A DNA stretch of 63,440 bases, filler included, from Octopus bimaculoides (lineage: Eukaryota): NCBI RefSeq assembly GCF_001194135.2. It is 5 parts of 5 records of this genome, joined end to end, with 100 filler letters (N's around TTAATTAATTAA, not from the genome) between each part and the next. Parts side by side here need not be neighbours in the genome. Positions count along the whole stretch, not along the records: positions 35,952 to 58,600 come from NC_069010.1; 4 more parts are not named here. One strand, 5' to 3'. Below are positions 37,708 through 56,033 of the stretch, piece by piece. The notes under the pieces are model-generated. The model saw only the letters and a program-made list of their open reading frames with translations, searched no databases and had not been told where the DNA came from. The position numbers were made by a program, and so were the translations under genes. The first letter of the stretch is position 1, and every line of letters begins with the position of its first letter.

Positions 37708-37779
37708 ATTTTAACTATGCTAGGGAGGAATAAGAAAGCGCCATCTTCATATTTCTCCATTGCGTTGTTGTCCAAATTT
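37708..37779 (-). CDS. LRR exon E9 (72 nt, phase 2-2): NLDNNAMEKYEDGAFLFLPSIVK
   Basis: Acceptor TCTCTTTTTCAG, donor GTAAGC, open frame, xLxxN...F..L consensus. Confidence 0.8.
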
Positions 37780-38140
37780 CTGAAAAAGAGACAAATATTA
37801 CACACTTTAAAATAAGTAAAAGTAAATAAATCTGTTTTCTCTTGTTCAGTACTAAATTACGTTTTAGTCAACACTAACAGAGTAAACGCTGATATTACTC
37901 ACTACAATCGTTTGTTTCTCTTTATAGTTCTTTATGGAAGTGTTGTTTGAACAAGAATAGTTTCCTTCAATCTAACTTAATTATCCTAAGAGAAAATCTG
38001 ATAACAAAAGAGCAAAAGATGGAAGAGGATAAAATATAAATATATAAAAATAACAACGAGACTTTCTTATGTTCACAATATGGGTTTTAATTAAAATTCT
38101 CATCTATGGTAGGAACATTATTCTCCATATAGGCATTGTT

Positions 38141-38287
38141 CTGTGGCTAGAAAATTACTTCTCACTTCCATGGATTCTTTAGTCCAACTGTGTGGCACCT
38201 TGGACAAATGTCATTTACTCTAACTTTGGGTCAACTAAGCGCTGTGAGTAAATTTGCTGCAGGAAAGTATGTGGATTCTATTCATAT

Positions 38288-38356
<69 letters not shown>

Positions 38357-38565
38357 NNNNNNNNNNTTTGTCCCCACCAACGCTTGATAACCAATATTGG
38401 TTTGTTTACGTCCCACGTAAGTTAGTGGTTCCGCAAAAGGTATCCGACTGATTAAGTGCCAGATTTTAAAAATTCAGTATAAAGGATGATTTGTTCAAGT
38501 AAACGCATGAAGGTAGTGCCCCAGCATGGCCGCAGTCTAATAACTGAAACAAGGAATAGTAAAAG
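38141..38565 (+). mobile_element. Diverged CORE-type SINE with internal (CA)(TA)n
   Basis: TGTGGCACCTTGGACAAATG and tail GTGCCCCAGCATGGCCGCAGTCTAATAACTGAAAC. Confidence 0.65.
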
Positions 38566-39183
38566 TATATACTCCAGTAGCAGTGTAATGATAAAAAAAG
38601 GTTTTCAAAAAAATGAAATATTAATTATTACAATAACATTGACCATCTTCAGACCAGTGCATAACTTTAAGAATCATATTCAAAACTCATAAAACAATGT
38701 TCACCTTTTGGTTGAAGATATATACTGGGTACCTATAAATTGACTTTACAATTTGAACAATTTCGAAGAAAATGAAGAATAAAGAGAGCTCATCAAACTT
38801 TATTGGAAATTATTGGCAAACAAATATCAGAAGCATTATAACACTTCGACGTGGATTCAATTGTTACATACCAATTTTACGTCGCTAAAAGCCACACTGC
38901 TTTTGCCTTGGTTGATTCTTTTAAATGGGATTTTCACTAAAAGAGTCTTCCCCATGAAGACATTCTTTTAAATCTGATTAATCTACACATTTTCTTTCAA
39001 AAATAACAGATATTTTGATTCAAAGTCACTTTTTCGCCTTACGCTGCTATTTTGGCCTCACATAGTTTGACATAACTGCTTTAAAGAACCAATTTCCAAT
39101 TATTTTAGCTCCAAATGCAGCTTACAACTCGATCATCATTGCCAAAACGATGAGACTAATTAGGTTGAGAACTAAATTACTAA

Positions 39184-52682: not shown

Positions 52683-53299
52683 GAAGGGTAAGAGGAGGAG
52701 GGGGAAGAGGGAGGAGAGGAAGAGGAAGGGGATGAAAAAGAGGAGGAGGAGAAGGAAGAGAAGGAGGAAGGGGAGGAGAAAGAGGAGGATGAGGAAGTGG
52801 AGGTGGATGAGGAAGTGGAGGAGGATGAGGAAGTGGAGGAGGAGTAGGAAGGTGGAAAGATAGGGAAGAAGAAGACGAAAAACAAAAGAAGAGGTAGGAG
52901 AAAATGAAGAAGAGGAGGAGAAATGGCAGGAGGAAGAGGAGGAGGAAGTGGAGGAGGATGAAGTGGAGGAGGAAGAGGGAAGAGGTGGAGGAGGAAGAGG
53001 AGGAGGAGGAAGAGGAAGAGGTAAAGGAAGAGGTAGAGGAAGAGGTAGAGGAAGAGGAGGAAGGGGAGGAGGAGAATGAAGAGGAGGAGAAGGAAGAGGA
53101 GGAGGAGAAGGAAGAGGAGGAAGAGGAGGAAGAGGAGGAAGAGGAGGAAGAGGAGGAAGAGGAGGAGGAACAACAACAACAACAAGAGGACACATTGAAC
53201 CTCGAGTTGATCGAGAAAATGAAAAGAGAAAAAGTATTCAAAAATGACAAGAAATAATTCATTGTGAGAAAGTAATATCAAGAAACTGAACGGACTTAC

Positions 53300-53371
53300 A
53301 GATACTTTAAATTCGAAAGCCCCGTGAATGCACCTGGTTTGATAGTTGCAATGTTGTTGGAATGAAGATAT
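53300..53371 (-). CDS. LRR exon E3 (72 nt, phase 2-2): YLHSNNIATIKPGAFTGLSNLKY
   Basis: Acceptor CTTTCTTTACTGCTATAG, donor GTAAGT, open frame. Confidence 0.88.
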
Positions 53372-54398
53372 CTATAGCAGTAAAGAAAGAGTAAAATAGG
53401 TTATATGGGAAATATTTGTGATACAATACCAAACACTGTGGCTTTAGAATGAAATACAGACAAATAAGGAGAGATAACGAAGAAGAAGAAGAAGAAGAAG
53501 AAGAAGAAGAAGAAGAAGAAGANNNNNNNNNNNNNNNNNNNNNNNNNNNNNNNNNNNNNNNNNNNNNNNNNNNNNNNNNNNNNNNNNNNNNNNNNNNNNN
53601 NNNNNNNNNNNNNNNNNNNNNNNNNNNNNNNNNNNNNNNNNNNNNNNNNNNNNNNNNNNNNNNNNNNNNNNNNNNNNNNNNNNNNNNNNNNNNNNNNNNN
53701 NNNNNNNNNNNNNNNNNNNNNNNNNNNNNNNNNNNNNNNNNNNNNNNNNNNNNNNNNNNNNNNNNNNNNNNNNNNNNNNNNNNNNNNNNNNNNNNNNNNN
53801 NNNNNNNNNNNNNNNNNNNNNNNNNNNNNNNNNNNNNNNNNNNNNNNNNNNNNNNNNNNNNNNNNNNNNNNNNNNNNNNNNNNNNNNNNNNNNNNNNNNN
53901 NNNNNNNNNNNNNNNNNNNNNNNNNNNNNNNNNNNNNNNNNNNNNNNNNNNNNNNNNNNNNNNNNNNNNNNNNNNNNNNNNNNNNNNNNNNNNNNNNNNN
54001 NNNNNNNNNNNNNNNNNNNNNNNNNNNNNNNNNNNNNNNNNNNNNNNNNNNNNNNNNNNNNNNNNNNNNNNNNNNNNNNNNNNNNNNNNNNNNNNNNNNN
54101 NNNNNNNNNNNNNNNNNNNNNNNNNNNNNNNNNNNNNNNNNNNNNNNNNNNNNNNNNNNNNNNNNNNNNNNNNNNNNNNNNNNNNNNNNNNNNNNNNNNN
54201 NNNNNNNNNNNNNNNNNNNNNNNNNNNNNNNNNNNNNNNNNNNNNNNNNNNNNNNNNNNNNNNNNNNNNNNNNNNNNNNNNNNNNNNNNNNNNNNNNNNN
54301 NNNNNNNNNNNNNNNNNNNNNNNNNNNNNNNNNNNNNNNNNNNNNNNNNNNNNNNNNNNNNNNNNNNNNNNNNNNNNNNNNNNNNNNNNNNNNNNNNN

Positions 54399-54470
54399 NN
54401 NNNNNNNAAATTCGAAAGCCCCTTGAATGCACCTGGTTTGATAGTTGCAATGTTGTTGGAGTAAAGATAT
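54399..54470 (-). CDS. LRR exon E2, donor end in gap: YLYSNNIATIKPGAFKGLSN...
   Basis: Same acceptor as E1 and E3; 54409-54470 is visible and open. The low coordinate assumes 72 nt. Confidence 0.8.
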
Positions 54471-55961
54471 CTATAGCAGTAAAGAAAGAGTAAAATATAT
54501 TATATGGCAAATATTTGTGATACAATATCGAACATTGTGTTTTAGAATGACAGGATGAAAGAACGCCAGATACCAATAAAGAAGAAGAAGAAGGAGAAGA
54601 TAAAGGAGAAGGAGAAGAAGAAGAAGAAAAAGAAGAAGACGAAGAAGAAAAAGGAGAAGAAAGAGAAGAAGACGAAGGAGAAGAAGAAGAGGAAGAGGTG
54701 GAAGAAAAAGACGGAGAAGAAGAGGAAGCAGTGGAAGAAGAAGACGAAGAAGATGGAGAAGAAAAAAGAAGACGAAGATGAAGAAGGAGAAGTAGGAGGA
54801 GGAGAAGAAGAAGAAGAAGAAGAAGAAGAAGAAGAAGAAGAAGAAGAAGAAGAAAACGATGAAGACGACGAAAGAAGAAAGGGATGATGATGATGAAGAA
54901 GAAGAAGAAGAGGAAGAAGAAGAAGAAGGAGAAGAAGAAGAAGAAGAAGAAGAAGAAGAAGAAGAAGAAGAAGAAGAAAGAGAAGANNNNNNNNNNNNNN
55001 NNNNNNNNNNNNNNNNNNNNNNNNNNNNNNNNNNNNNNNNNNNNNNNNNNNNNNNNNNNNNNNNNNNNNNNNNNNNNNNNNNNNNNNNNNNNNNNNNNNN
55101 NNNNNNNNNNNNNNNNNNNNNNNNNNNNNNNNNNNNNNNNNNNNNNNNNNNNNNNNNNNNNNNNNNNNNNNNNNNNNNNNNNNNNNNNNNNNNNNNNNNN
55201 NNNNNNNNNNNNNNNNNNNNNNNNNNNNNNNNNNNNNNNNNNNNNNNNNNNNNNNNNNNNNNNNNNNNNNNNNNNNNNNNNNNNNNNNNNNNNNNNNNNN
55301 NNNNNNNNNNNNNNNNNNNNNNNNNNNNNNNNNNNNNNNNNNNNNNNNNNNNNNNNNNNNNNNNNNNNNNNNNNNNNNNNNNNNNNNNNNNNNNNNNNNN
55401 NNNNNNNNNNNNNNNNNNNNNNNNNNNNNNNNNNNNNNNNNNNNNNNNNNNNNNNNNNNNNNNNNNNNNNNNNNNNNNNNNNNNNNNNNNNNNNNNNNNN
55501 NNNNNNNNNNNNNNNNNNNNNNNNNNNNNNNNNNNNNNNNNNNNNNNNNNNNNNNNNNNNNNNNNNNNNNNNNNNNNNNNNNNNNNNNNNNNNNNNNNNN
55601 NNNNNNNNNNNNNNNNNNNNNNNNNNNNNNNNNNNNNNNNNNNNNNNNNNNNNNNNNNNNNNNNNNNNNNNNNNNNNNNNNNNNNNNNNNNNNNNNNNNN
55701 NNNNNNNNNNNNNNNNNNNNNNNNNNNNNNNNNNNNNNNNNNNNNNNNNNNNNNNNNNNNNNNNNNNNNNNNNNNNNNNNNNNNNNNNNNNNNNNNNNNN
55801 NNNNNNNNNNNNNNNNNNNNNNNNNNNNNNNNNNNNNNNNNNNNNNNNNNNNNNNNNNNNNNNNNNNNNNNNNNNNNNNNNNNNNNNNNNNNNNNNNNNN
55901 NNNNNNNNNNNNNNNNNAATTCATTGTCAGAAAGTAATATCAAGAAATTGAACGAACTTAC

Positions 55962-56033
55962 AATGTCTGTAAATTCGAAAGACCCTTGAATGTATCTGGT
56001 TTGATAGTTGCAATGTTGTTGGAGCGAAGATTT
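55962..56033 (-). CDS. LRR exon E1 (72 nt, phase 2-2): NLRSNNIATIKPDTFKGLSNLQT
   Basis: Acceptor CTTTCTTTACTGCTATAG, donor GTAAGT, open frame. Confidence 0.88.

Follow-up and report, generated by a model that had tools for sequence, protein, structure and literature searches.

Can a run of exons, each coding for a single leucine-rich repeat (LRR), act as a set of interchangeable cassettes in the gene of an animal receptor? The question is raised by a locus in the genome of Octopus bimaculoides (NCBI RefSeq assembly GCF_001194135.2). The window, that is, the whole stretch of DNA presented, has 63,440 nucleotides (nt) and is composed of five parts of this genome joined by filler letters. The piece analysed here, positions 35952-58600 of the window, comes from NC_069010.1, has a G+C content of 36% and includes eight runs of N. 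It is 100% identical to O. bimaculoides CM046630.1, where the locus lies at about 0.62-0.69 Mb, and represents the front, LRR-coding part of LOC106877465, a gene that has already been annotated. The explanation that we favour, and consider likely, is that LOC106877465 is an octopod gene of the LRR-bearing adhesion G protein-coupled receptor (GPCR) type, whose tandem and symmetric LRR exons undergo turnover as whole units and are subject to selection on the concave surface formed by the repeats that they encode.

Exon anatomy and gene identity

Both strands of the piece were scanned for an AG, 72 nt and a GT enclosing an open phase-2 frame with an LRR pattern. The minus strand yielded five complete exons and the plus strand none, against a mean of 0.18 matches and a maximum of two in Markov shuffles. 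Peptide searches added one exon of 69 nt, two exons cut by assembly gaps and one truncated copy. This gives a credible total of eight exons and one relic, all on the minus strand (Table 1). The initial annotation had counted at least nine minus-strand LRR exons; eight of these stand, while the ninth (49546-49576) is a dead relic. When the cassette peptides are concatenated, they match LRR_8 with E=1.4e-87.

Wherever they can be seen, acceptors are AG and donors (six in all) GTAAG; every intron is in phase 2, as first described, and a single exon (40718-40786) is indeed one codon short, without the Asn. The first base is A or G in all exons, and the last two bases are TT or CT in all internal ones. 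The junction codon, which takes two bases from the previous exon and the third from the next, is Leu at each internal junction, as had been claimed; the last exon ends in AT and gives Ile. Each exon carries one repeat, has a length that is a multiple of three and has the same phase on both sides, and this is also true of the cassettes in three contigs from Octopus sinensis (L005, L006 and L007). Because the exons are symmetric phase-2 units, any subset of them can be spliced in frame, which upholds the proposal made at the outset. Exon size and phase as such are ordinary for animal LRR genes.

Two sets of public protein models cover the array. P0013 (UniParc, 116 residues) joins a signal peptide/LRRNT exon to cassettes 55962 and 54408 and ends exactly at a gap. 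Its first 72 residues are absent from the piece, so that exon 1 is placed beyond 58600; its LRRNT scores 27.4 bits (Pfam cut-off 25.8). P0098 (UniParc) and P0145 (XP_052834016.1) splice cassettes 43302, 42076, 40718 and 37708 in that order. They continue, in exons located downstream and beyond the low-coordinate end of the piece (35952), with an LRRCT, a module of ten cysteines (10-Cys), an SEA-like stretch, a weakly matching HRM and the N-terminal half of a GAIN. LOC106877465 is one gene that has been divided into two partial models by assembly gaps. The exon with which only the RefSeq model begins (46789-46892) is probably a stop-gap start forced by these gaps.

The array had been described as hidden. 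This is not the case: six of its exons are already included in public models (two in P0013 and four in P0098/XP_052834016.1), and the public models lack cassettes 53300 and 50092. The initial annotation had also considered the gene identity to be unresolved since no N-cap, C-cap or transmembrane exon had been seen, and had proposed a protein-level search for flanking domains. Public proteins supply the LRRNT side (P0013) and the LRRCT/HRM/GAIN side (P0098): the caps lie just outside the piece and the family is known, but a transmembrane exon was indeed not found. With its LRRs, an LRRNT and a Cys-containing C-cap, the protein has the components of a capped extracellular LRR domain.

By homology, LOC106877465 is assigned to an octopod-specific family of LRR-bearing adhesion GPCRs. 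All 37 matches to the non-LRR part are Octopus proteins, to which an exhaustive search added one member from Argonauta. The full-length relatives in O. bimaculoides (1010-1283 residues) carry LRRs, GPS and 7tm_2, with a Death domain in one of them. Residues 1-550 of P0098 match P0155 (1283 residues), P0158 (1132 residues) and P0162 (1010 residues) with E values of 1e-119 to 1e-189, and all three carry GPS and 7tm_2, as expected of members of an octopod expansion. The family fits the 'group 3' octopus-specific adhesion-GPCR expansion of Ritschard et al. 2019 (PMC6408891), in which LRRs are present in five of 22 members and a Death domain in one, and whose genes are clustered or co-localised, show positive selection and are expressed in the axial nerve cord, suckers and skin. 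That set began from seven-transmembrane (7TM) matches and does not treat exon structure, cassette hypervariability or isoforms; LOC106877465, which has no detectable 7TM, would have fallen outside it. No description of LRR cassettes in cephalopods was found in the literature searched.

Table 1. Cassettes and associated features of the LOC106877465 array (positions in the window; a slash separates the exon end from the donor)
Feature	Position	Strand	Remarks
LRR cassette, type A, LNLRSNNIATIKPDTFKGLSNLQT	55962-56033	-	72 nt, phase 2-2, end TT/gtaagt; first cassette after exon 1 in P0013
LRR cassette, type A, LYLYSNNIATIKPGAFKGLSN..	54408-54470	-	63 nt visible; last 9 nt and donor lost in gap 53523-54407
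LRR cassette, type A, LYLHSNNIATIKPGAFTGLSNLKY	53300-53371	-	72 nt, end CT/gtaagt; absent from public gene models
LRR cassette, type A' (LNLFTNNI..)	50092-50113	-	first 22 nt visible, remainder in gap 49769-50091
Type-A cassette relic	49546-49576	-	31 nt of homology, then unrelated sequence; in-frame stop, no donor
LRR cassette, type A, LHLGSNNISTIKDGIFTKLSNLTT	43302-43373	-	72 nt, end TT/gtaagt
LRR cassette, type B-like, LTLDGNNITMIEKGSFRDLHSLQE	42076-42147	-	72 nt, end CT/gtaagt
LRR cassette, type B, LVLYKTISRIEKGMFQGLHSLQK	40718-40786	-	69 nt, end TT/gtaaga; without the conserved repeat Asn
Terminal LRR cassette, LNLDNNAMEKYEDGAFLFLPSIVK	37708-37779	-	72 nt, end AT/gtaagc; joins LRRCT exon outside the piece
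Assembly gap, putative hidden type-B cassette at ~51107-51178	51076-51675	.	indicated by flank
First exon unique to RefSeq XP_052834016.1 (MSLPPRPP..VLK; MSLPPRPPITSF…)	46789-46892	-	without signal peptide; phase-2 splice to cassette 43302
Conserved intron spacer before type-A acceptor (…tcattctaaaa…tttactgctatag)	56034-56141	-	copies 54471-54578, 53372-53478, 43374-43457
Sense-strand (CTT)n polypyrimidine tract upstream of cassette	56142-56488	-	others 54579-54986, 53479-53522, 50337-50469, 49669-49768, 43458-43546, 40897-41024

The domains that follow the array are recognised with different degrees of ease. The C-cap ('NNLMRCGCHLPAFV…TC'), directly after the last cassette in P0098, has no Pfam LRRCT match, and the HRM (E=0.008, 17 bits) is below its Pfam cut-off of 26.2. 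The N-terminal half of the GAIN is indicated by a precomputed match to PF26588 (GAIN_ADGRA3), by homology with P0111/P0104 and by model helices at 406-517. The 10-Cys module, which ends in CCVGHLCNKNDF, is Ly6/uPAR-like by motif and gave no Pfam or PDB sequence match. A comparison of the stalk with PDB 6V55 (ADGRG6) was rejected as not significant (E=0.73). The AlphaFold model of P0098 has a mean pLDDT of 57.6 and is confident only in the LRR part.

In an O. sinensis paralog (P0118, on L006) the 10-Cys module follows the LRRCT in three tandem copies, so that the stalk is also modular. Paralogous exons for the Cys-rich module are found on the opposite strand of the O. bimaculoides sequence L004 (50640-50828 and 53008-53100), which indicates that family members are clustered tail-to-tail. 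Within the piece, three open reading frames in introns (39184-39558, 39714-40004 and 47352-47660) had no Pfam match and an Rfam search gave no match. (TA)n and (CA)n/(TG)n microsatellites (38357-38366 and 36755-37510) occur in an intron and downstream of the terminal cassette; a gap of 10 N lies within the (TA)n run and touches no exon.

Unit duplication, the binding face and isoforms

Comparison of the sequences supports an origin of the cassettes by tandem duplication of exon-plus-intron units. The units in the window are 78-94% identical, intron included, in agreement with the amplification that had been proposed for them. The gap-free O. sinensis contig L005 has 12 intact 72-nt cassettes, in which two types mostly alternate: type A (NNIxTIKEGxFTGLSNLK, intron end ttactgctatag) and type B (NKISRIEKEMFQGLHNLEK, intron end ttcctgcttcag). 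Whole units of this contig, including their introns, are 82-93% alike. Six cassettes are present on L006 and six on L007; the latter, which is collinear with window positions 40393-35952 at 86% and has its cassettes in an order that differs from that of the window, probably carries the ortholog of LOC106877465. Both the number and the content of the cassettes differ among paralogs and between LOC106877465 and this likely ortholog, whereas a number fixed across individuals and species, together with a single constitutive isoform, had been named in advance as an argument against a variable array. Details of the units are shared between the two species: the type of the terminal cassette (37708-37779) recurs on L006 and L007, the intron end 'actgcaacag' before cassette 50092-50113 is that of the A' cassettes of L007, and the intron spacer listed in Table 1 is also conserved in O. 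sinensis, where it is the least variable part of the unit in L005.

The variation between cassettes is concentrated at a few codons. In 59 distinct cassettes taken from proteins of the family, positions 2, 4 and 5 of the repeat have an entropy of 2.6-3.2 bits and position 24 one of 1.9-2.3 bits, with values mostly below 1.3 bits elsewhere, in a collection for which the search pattern fixed 12 of the other positions. A set of 28 cassettes, found by means of their splice sites alone, gave the same entropy pattern. According to standard LRR geometry, positions 24, 2, 4 and 5 are predicted to be the concave, ligand-facing residues, and the AlphaFold strands lie at positions 24-1-2, straddling the exon junctions.

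In L005, the introns that flank type-B cassettes have a nucleotide diversity (pi) of 0.00-0.05 and codons 2, 4 and 5 a pi of 0.4-0.6. Segregating sites make up seven of nine and eight of nine sites in these codons, compared with 23 of 400 and 68 of 400 intron sites (Fisher p = 2e-7 and 8e-6), and the remainder of the exon does not differ from the intron in this respect. The rate of non-synonymous change (dN) at these codons is 1.16-1.28; elsewhere in the exon the synonymous rate (dS) is 0.12-0.19 and dN/dS is 0.2-0.4. An excess of non-synonymous change on the concave face is, in this way, found both in L005 and in the family-wide entropy. On the simplest reading, selection maintains diversity at the binding face against a background of introns that are homogenised, or of units that are young.

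Nearly every internal cassette in the window and in L005-L007 is preceded by pure polypyrimidine tracts on the sense strand; most of these are (CTT)n, and their lengths range from 30 to 400 nt. The (CTT)n tracts usually end about 85-130 nt before the acceptor, and the terminal cassette is without one. Counted on the sense strand (tracts of at least 30 nt), C/T and A/G tracts number 32 and 0 in the window, 79 and 1 in L005, 15 and 2 in L006 and 48 and 3 in L007. The (CTT)n tracts could be hitch-hiking microsatellites or a splicing signal (UCUU-rich, of the polypyrimidine tract-binding protein type).

In related genes, the cassettes are annotated in different combinations. The L005 gene has 13 RefSeq isoforms, of 409, 385, 361 or 337 residues, which join the 5' cassettes a, b, c, e and d in various combinations to a constant block f-j; g is skipped in one isoform, and none of them uses k or l. 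Another O. sinensis gene has isoforms of 525, 501 and 477 residues and an Octopus vulgaris gene, from a separate annotation, isoforms of 489, 465 and 441 residues. The length steps correspond to whole cassettes (multiples of 24 residues) and, in these two genes also, occur at the 5' end of the array. Cassette inclusion is additive because isoform lengths change in 24-residue steps. A mutually exclusive cluster of the Dscam type was rejected, since the isoforms of the relatives differ by 24, 48 and 72 residues instead of having a constant length. By analogy, we infer that the cassettes of LOC106877465 may also be alternatively included.

Some O. sinensis isoforms contain 'hybrid' cassettes. An origin of these by recombination or cryptic splicing was rejected: they compensate a one-base homopolymer difference between two contigs (A8 at ~11195-11205 of L005, A7 at ~14132-14141 of L001), as a result of which cassette 'a' has 73 nt instead of 72 in L005.

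The mechanism that we propose is as follows. The protein would begin with a signal peptide and the LRRNT, continue with LRRs in series, each from its own 72-nt phase-2 exon, and with a terminal 'EKYEDGAFLFLPSI' LRR, and then have an LRRCT, the 10-Cys module, the SEA-like stretch, an HRM and a GAIN. The array is built of tandem copies in which exon and intron form one unit, and these units fall into two main types, A and B. Through unequal crossing-over or gene conversion, for which the near-identical introns would serve as partners, units would be added, removed and homogenised, and selection would keep the codons for the concave-face residues (24, 2, 4 and 5) different. Because the exon junction sits inside the beta-strand Leu1 codon, each strand would be built from two neighbouring exons. 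Such an array would be able to yield variable ectodomains through exon choice, as is annotated in the relatives, and cassette variation, we infer, would tune ligand binding.

Alternative readings of the array

Several observations weigh against a working, diversifying receptor gene and are given here with the alternatives to be considered. In the three complete type-A exons of the window, the contrast at the hypervariable codons is weak (pN 0.36, pS 0.40) and dN/dS is about 1.7 elsewhere in the exon, and in the pair of window units that are 94% identical, exon changes are not significantly in excess (p=0.13). In the 10 kb that follow the last exon in O. bimaculoides (L004), where gaps could hide them, exons for GPS or 7TM were not found; a 7TM match was also not found in the 3.9 kb after the last exon of the O. 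sinensis counterpart. At about 2.4 kb beyond the last exon of the gene there is a paralog in tail-to-tail orientation. P0013 has Ile in place of the usual start Met, and one cassette (40718-40786) is without the Asn. In addition, the models from O. bimaculoides (L004 48275) and O. sinensis (L007 ~44440) both read through the same GTAC donor after the GAIN exon, to end in …TMVQNVLMITL… and …TMVPKVLMITL…, respectively. This common end could mean that the two species share a truncated 3' end, or that the annotation failed in the same way in both.

The copy could be a secreted, truncated form or in decay, or its assembly could simply be incomplete. If the paralog is truncated or decaying, whether as a pseudogene or as a secreted protein that is not a receptor, the array would be a fossil of the family architecture and not a working generator of diversity. 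The missing GPS/7TM exons and the tail-to-tail neighbour, the read-through of one donor in two species, the replacement of Met by Ile, the 69-nt cassette together with the relic, and the dN/dS in the scaffold codons of the type-A cassettes would all be accommodated. However, the reading frame is open in all eight cassettes and their splice sites are canonical, the model has open downstream exons, the gaps may conceal the missing exons, and a truncated end common to both species is suggestive of a form that has been retained and not of recent decay. We regard a fossil array as a possibility to be kept in mind, although on the unlikely side.

It might also be argued that this is an ordinary, constitutive LRR domain with an inherited layout, in which all cassettes are included. 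The isoforms of the relatives are computed models, and mis-mapped junction reads in repeats could create them; they would then be artefacts of short-read mapping. The models of LOC106877465 show a single exon path. The four or five of the 13 O. sinensis isoforms that hold hybrid cassettes are annotation work-arounds for the A8/A7 difference, and the models are in this sense not clean. When exon 1 and the first cassette were used to search for transcript-derived products, only P0013 itself was returned. Nevertheless, eight of the 13 isoforms are plain exon-skipping combinations via canonical sites and the O. vulgaris annotation, which was deposited separately, has the same 24-residue steps. Some intact cassettes (k and l in L005; 3160 and 3745 in L007) are left out of even the longest models. 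A purely constitutive domain is, in our opinion, unlikely.

A further objection concerns the assembly, since cassette order and number rest on a scaffold rich in gaps. The eight gaps in 22.6 kb are considered to be repeat-induced because all abut (CTT)n tracts or cassette sequence, and a newer public version of the assembly has identical gaps with identical flanks. Each complete exon falls entirely inside read sequence; two exons run into gaps, and the gap at 54987-55917 also falls within the span of the array. Just below the gap at 51076-51675, the flank (50659-51075) matches the intron from +32 after the 69-nt exon 40718 (89% over 426 nt). This match points to a further type-B cassette, probably hidden with its donor about 31 nt into the gap. 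The number of cassettes is a lower bound and their order is only as reliable as the scaffold.

The array could even be, in part, an artefact in which allelic or collapsed copies have been placed in tandem around the gaps, so that the true number is smaller or different. Apart from the position of the gaps, this would fit with the finding that the most similar units (54408 and 55971, 94%) are parted by a gap alone and with the break of four O. sinensis contigs, likewise within LRR-cassette arrays. The copies in the window nevertheless differ by 6-22%, amino-acid positions included, which far exceeds the expectation between alleles, and gap-free PacBio contigs of relatives contain the same kind of array with 6-12 cassettes. 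An artefact of this kind therefore seems quite improbable to us. Finally, the idea that the cassettes are donors for somatic DNA assembly similar to that of the lamprey variable lymphocyte receptors (VLRs), suggested by the shared use of LRR modules with hypervariable concave faces, can be dismissed as barely conceivable: every cassette has its own acceptor and GTAAG donor and is ordered within the gene between N-cap and C-cap exons, and the length variants are accounted for by splicing.

Related systems and significance

In working mode, the LRR-ROCO family of brown algae is, by analogy, the closest to LOC106877465. These genes devote one exon of 72 nt (24 residues) to each LRR; the exons are shuffled, sites on the concave face are under positive selection, and alternative splicing acts on the LRR exons in tandem (Zambounis et al. 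2012, PMC3341825; Teng et al. 2024, PMC11378527). They belong to a different kingdom and have a ROC-COR GTPase part, whereas the octopus gene has an extracellular, LRRNT/LRRCT-capped adhesion-GPCR ectodomain, and there is no homology between the two beyond the LRR fold.

Among animals, the LGR/relaxin-type receptors, Slit and LRIG also have one LRR per 72-nt phase-2 exon, and LGR4/5, LRIG1 and Slit2 are included in the closest solved LRR sequences. To our knowledge, the number of repeats in LGR/relaxin-type, Slit and LRIG genes is fixed across species and there is no hypervariable face. The number of cassettes in the octopus genes, in contrast, changes between close relatives. ADGRA2/3 (GPR124/125) shares with the octopus gene an order of N-terminal LRRs followed by HRM, GAIN and 7TM, and the precomputed Pfam match is to GAIN_ADGRA3. 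One O. bimaculoides relative (cluster representative P0158) carries the name ADGRA3, with an identity of only about 42%. ADGRA2/3 has an Ig domain; this was not detected in the octopus gene, where the 10-Cys module and SEA-like stretch are found in its place, and the number of LRRs in the octopus is variable and often much larger.

Other recognition systems resemble the array in part. Lamprey VLRs are also capped LRR solenoids with modular cassettes and diversity on the concave face, but are put together from cassettes that have no splice sites, by somatic assembly of the DNA, in contrast to the germline exons of octopus that are joined by splicing. Dscam1 and the clustered protocadherins are likewise surface-recognition genes in which arrays of duplicated exons give many isoforms. 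Dscam uses mutually exclusive choice and the protocadherins use promoter choice, and the fold in octopus is the LRR. For the 'VLR2' of the crab Eriocheir sinensis, the part of the source that we cite (PMC10045472) describes an invertebrate LRR protein with ten isoforms, whose LRR content is varied by alternative splicing; this is a single secreted immune protein, and that part of the source mentions neither a cassette array nor an analysis of hypervariability nor a GPCR context.

What is new here is that hypervariable cassettes, homogeneous introns, changing copy number and combinatorial isoforms come together in an animal receptor family. In the literature searched, such a combination is described for the brown-algal ROCO genes and not for an animal receptor family.

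There is also a practical warning, as LRR-cassette arrays break both assemblies and gene models. Four O. sinensis PacBio contigs (L001, L002, L003 and L007) end within about 1-1.5 kb of an LRR cassette. The RefSeq proteins of 108-136 residues named 'LRRC4-like' or 'LINGO-like', as well as the partial protein P0101 (482 residues), represent arrays of this kind in truncated form. LRR-bearing members are probably understated in the family counts and domain tables of cephalopods.

A much broader proposal can be made only tentatively, and we think it unlikely: octopods would run a germline-encoded, splicing-based system of LRR diversity, in which dozens of genes of the adhesion-GPCR family each have an array of cassettes that differ almost exclusively on the binding face and are kept different by selection against the homogenisation of introns. 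Neurons, sucker cells or blood cells would acquire distinct surface codes or ligand repertoires from cell-specific combinations of cassettes, which the (CTT)n tracts might direct. If true, the octopod system would be the LRR counterpart of Dscam or of the clustered protocadherins. Octopus genomes contain large expansions of recognition molecules, including protocadherins and GPCRs. For the specificity of such molecules, the present locus suggests a second layer within one expanded family, that of interchangeable binding-face exons, by which the repertoire may be multiplied through copy number and exon choice.

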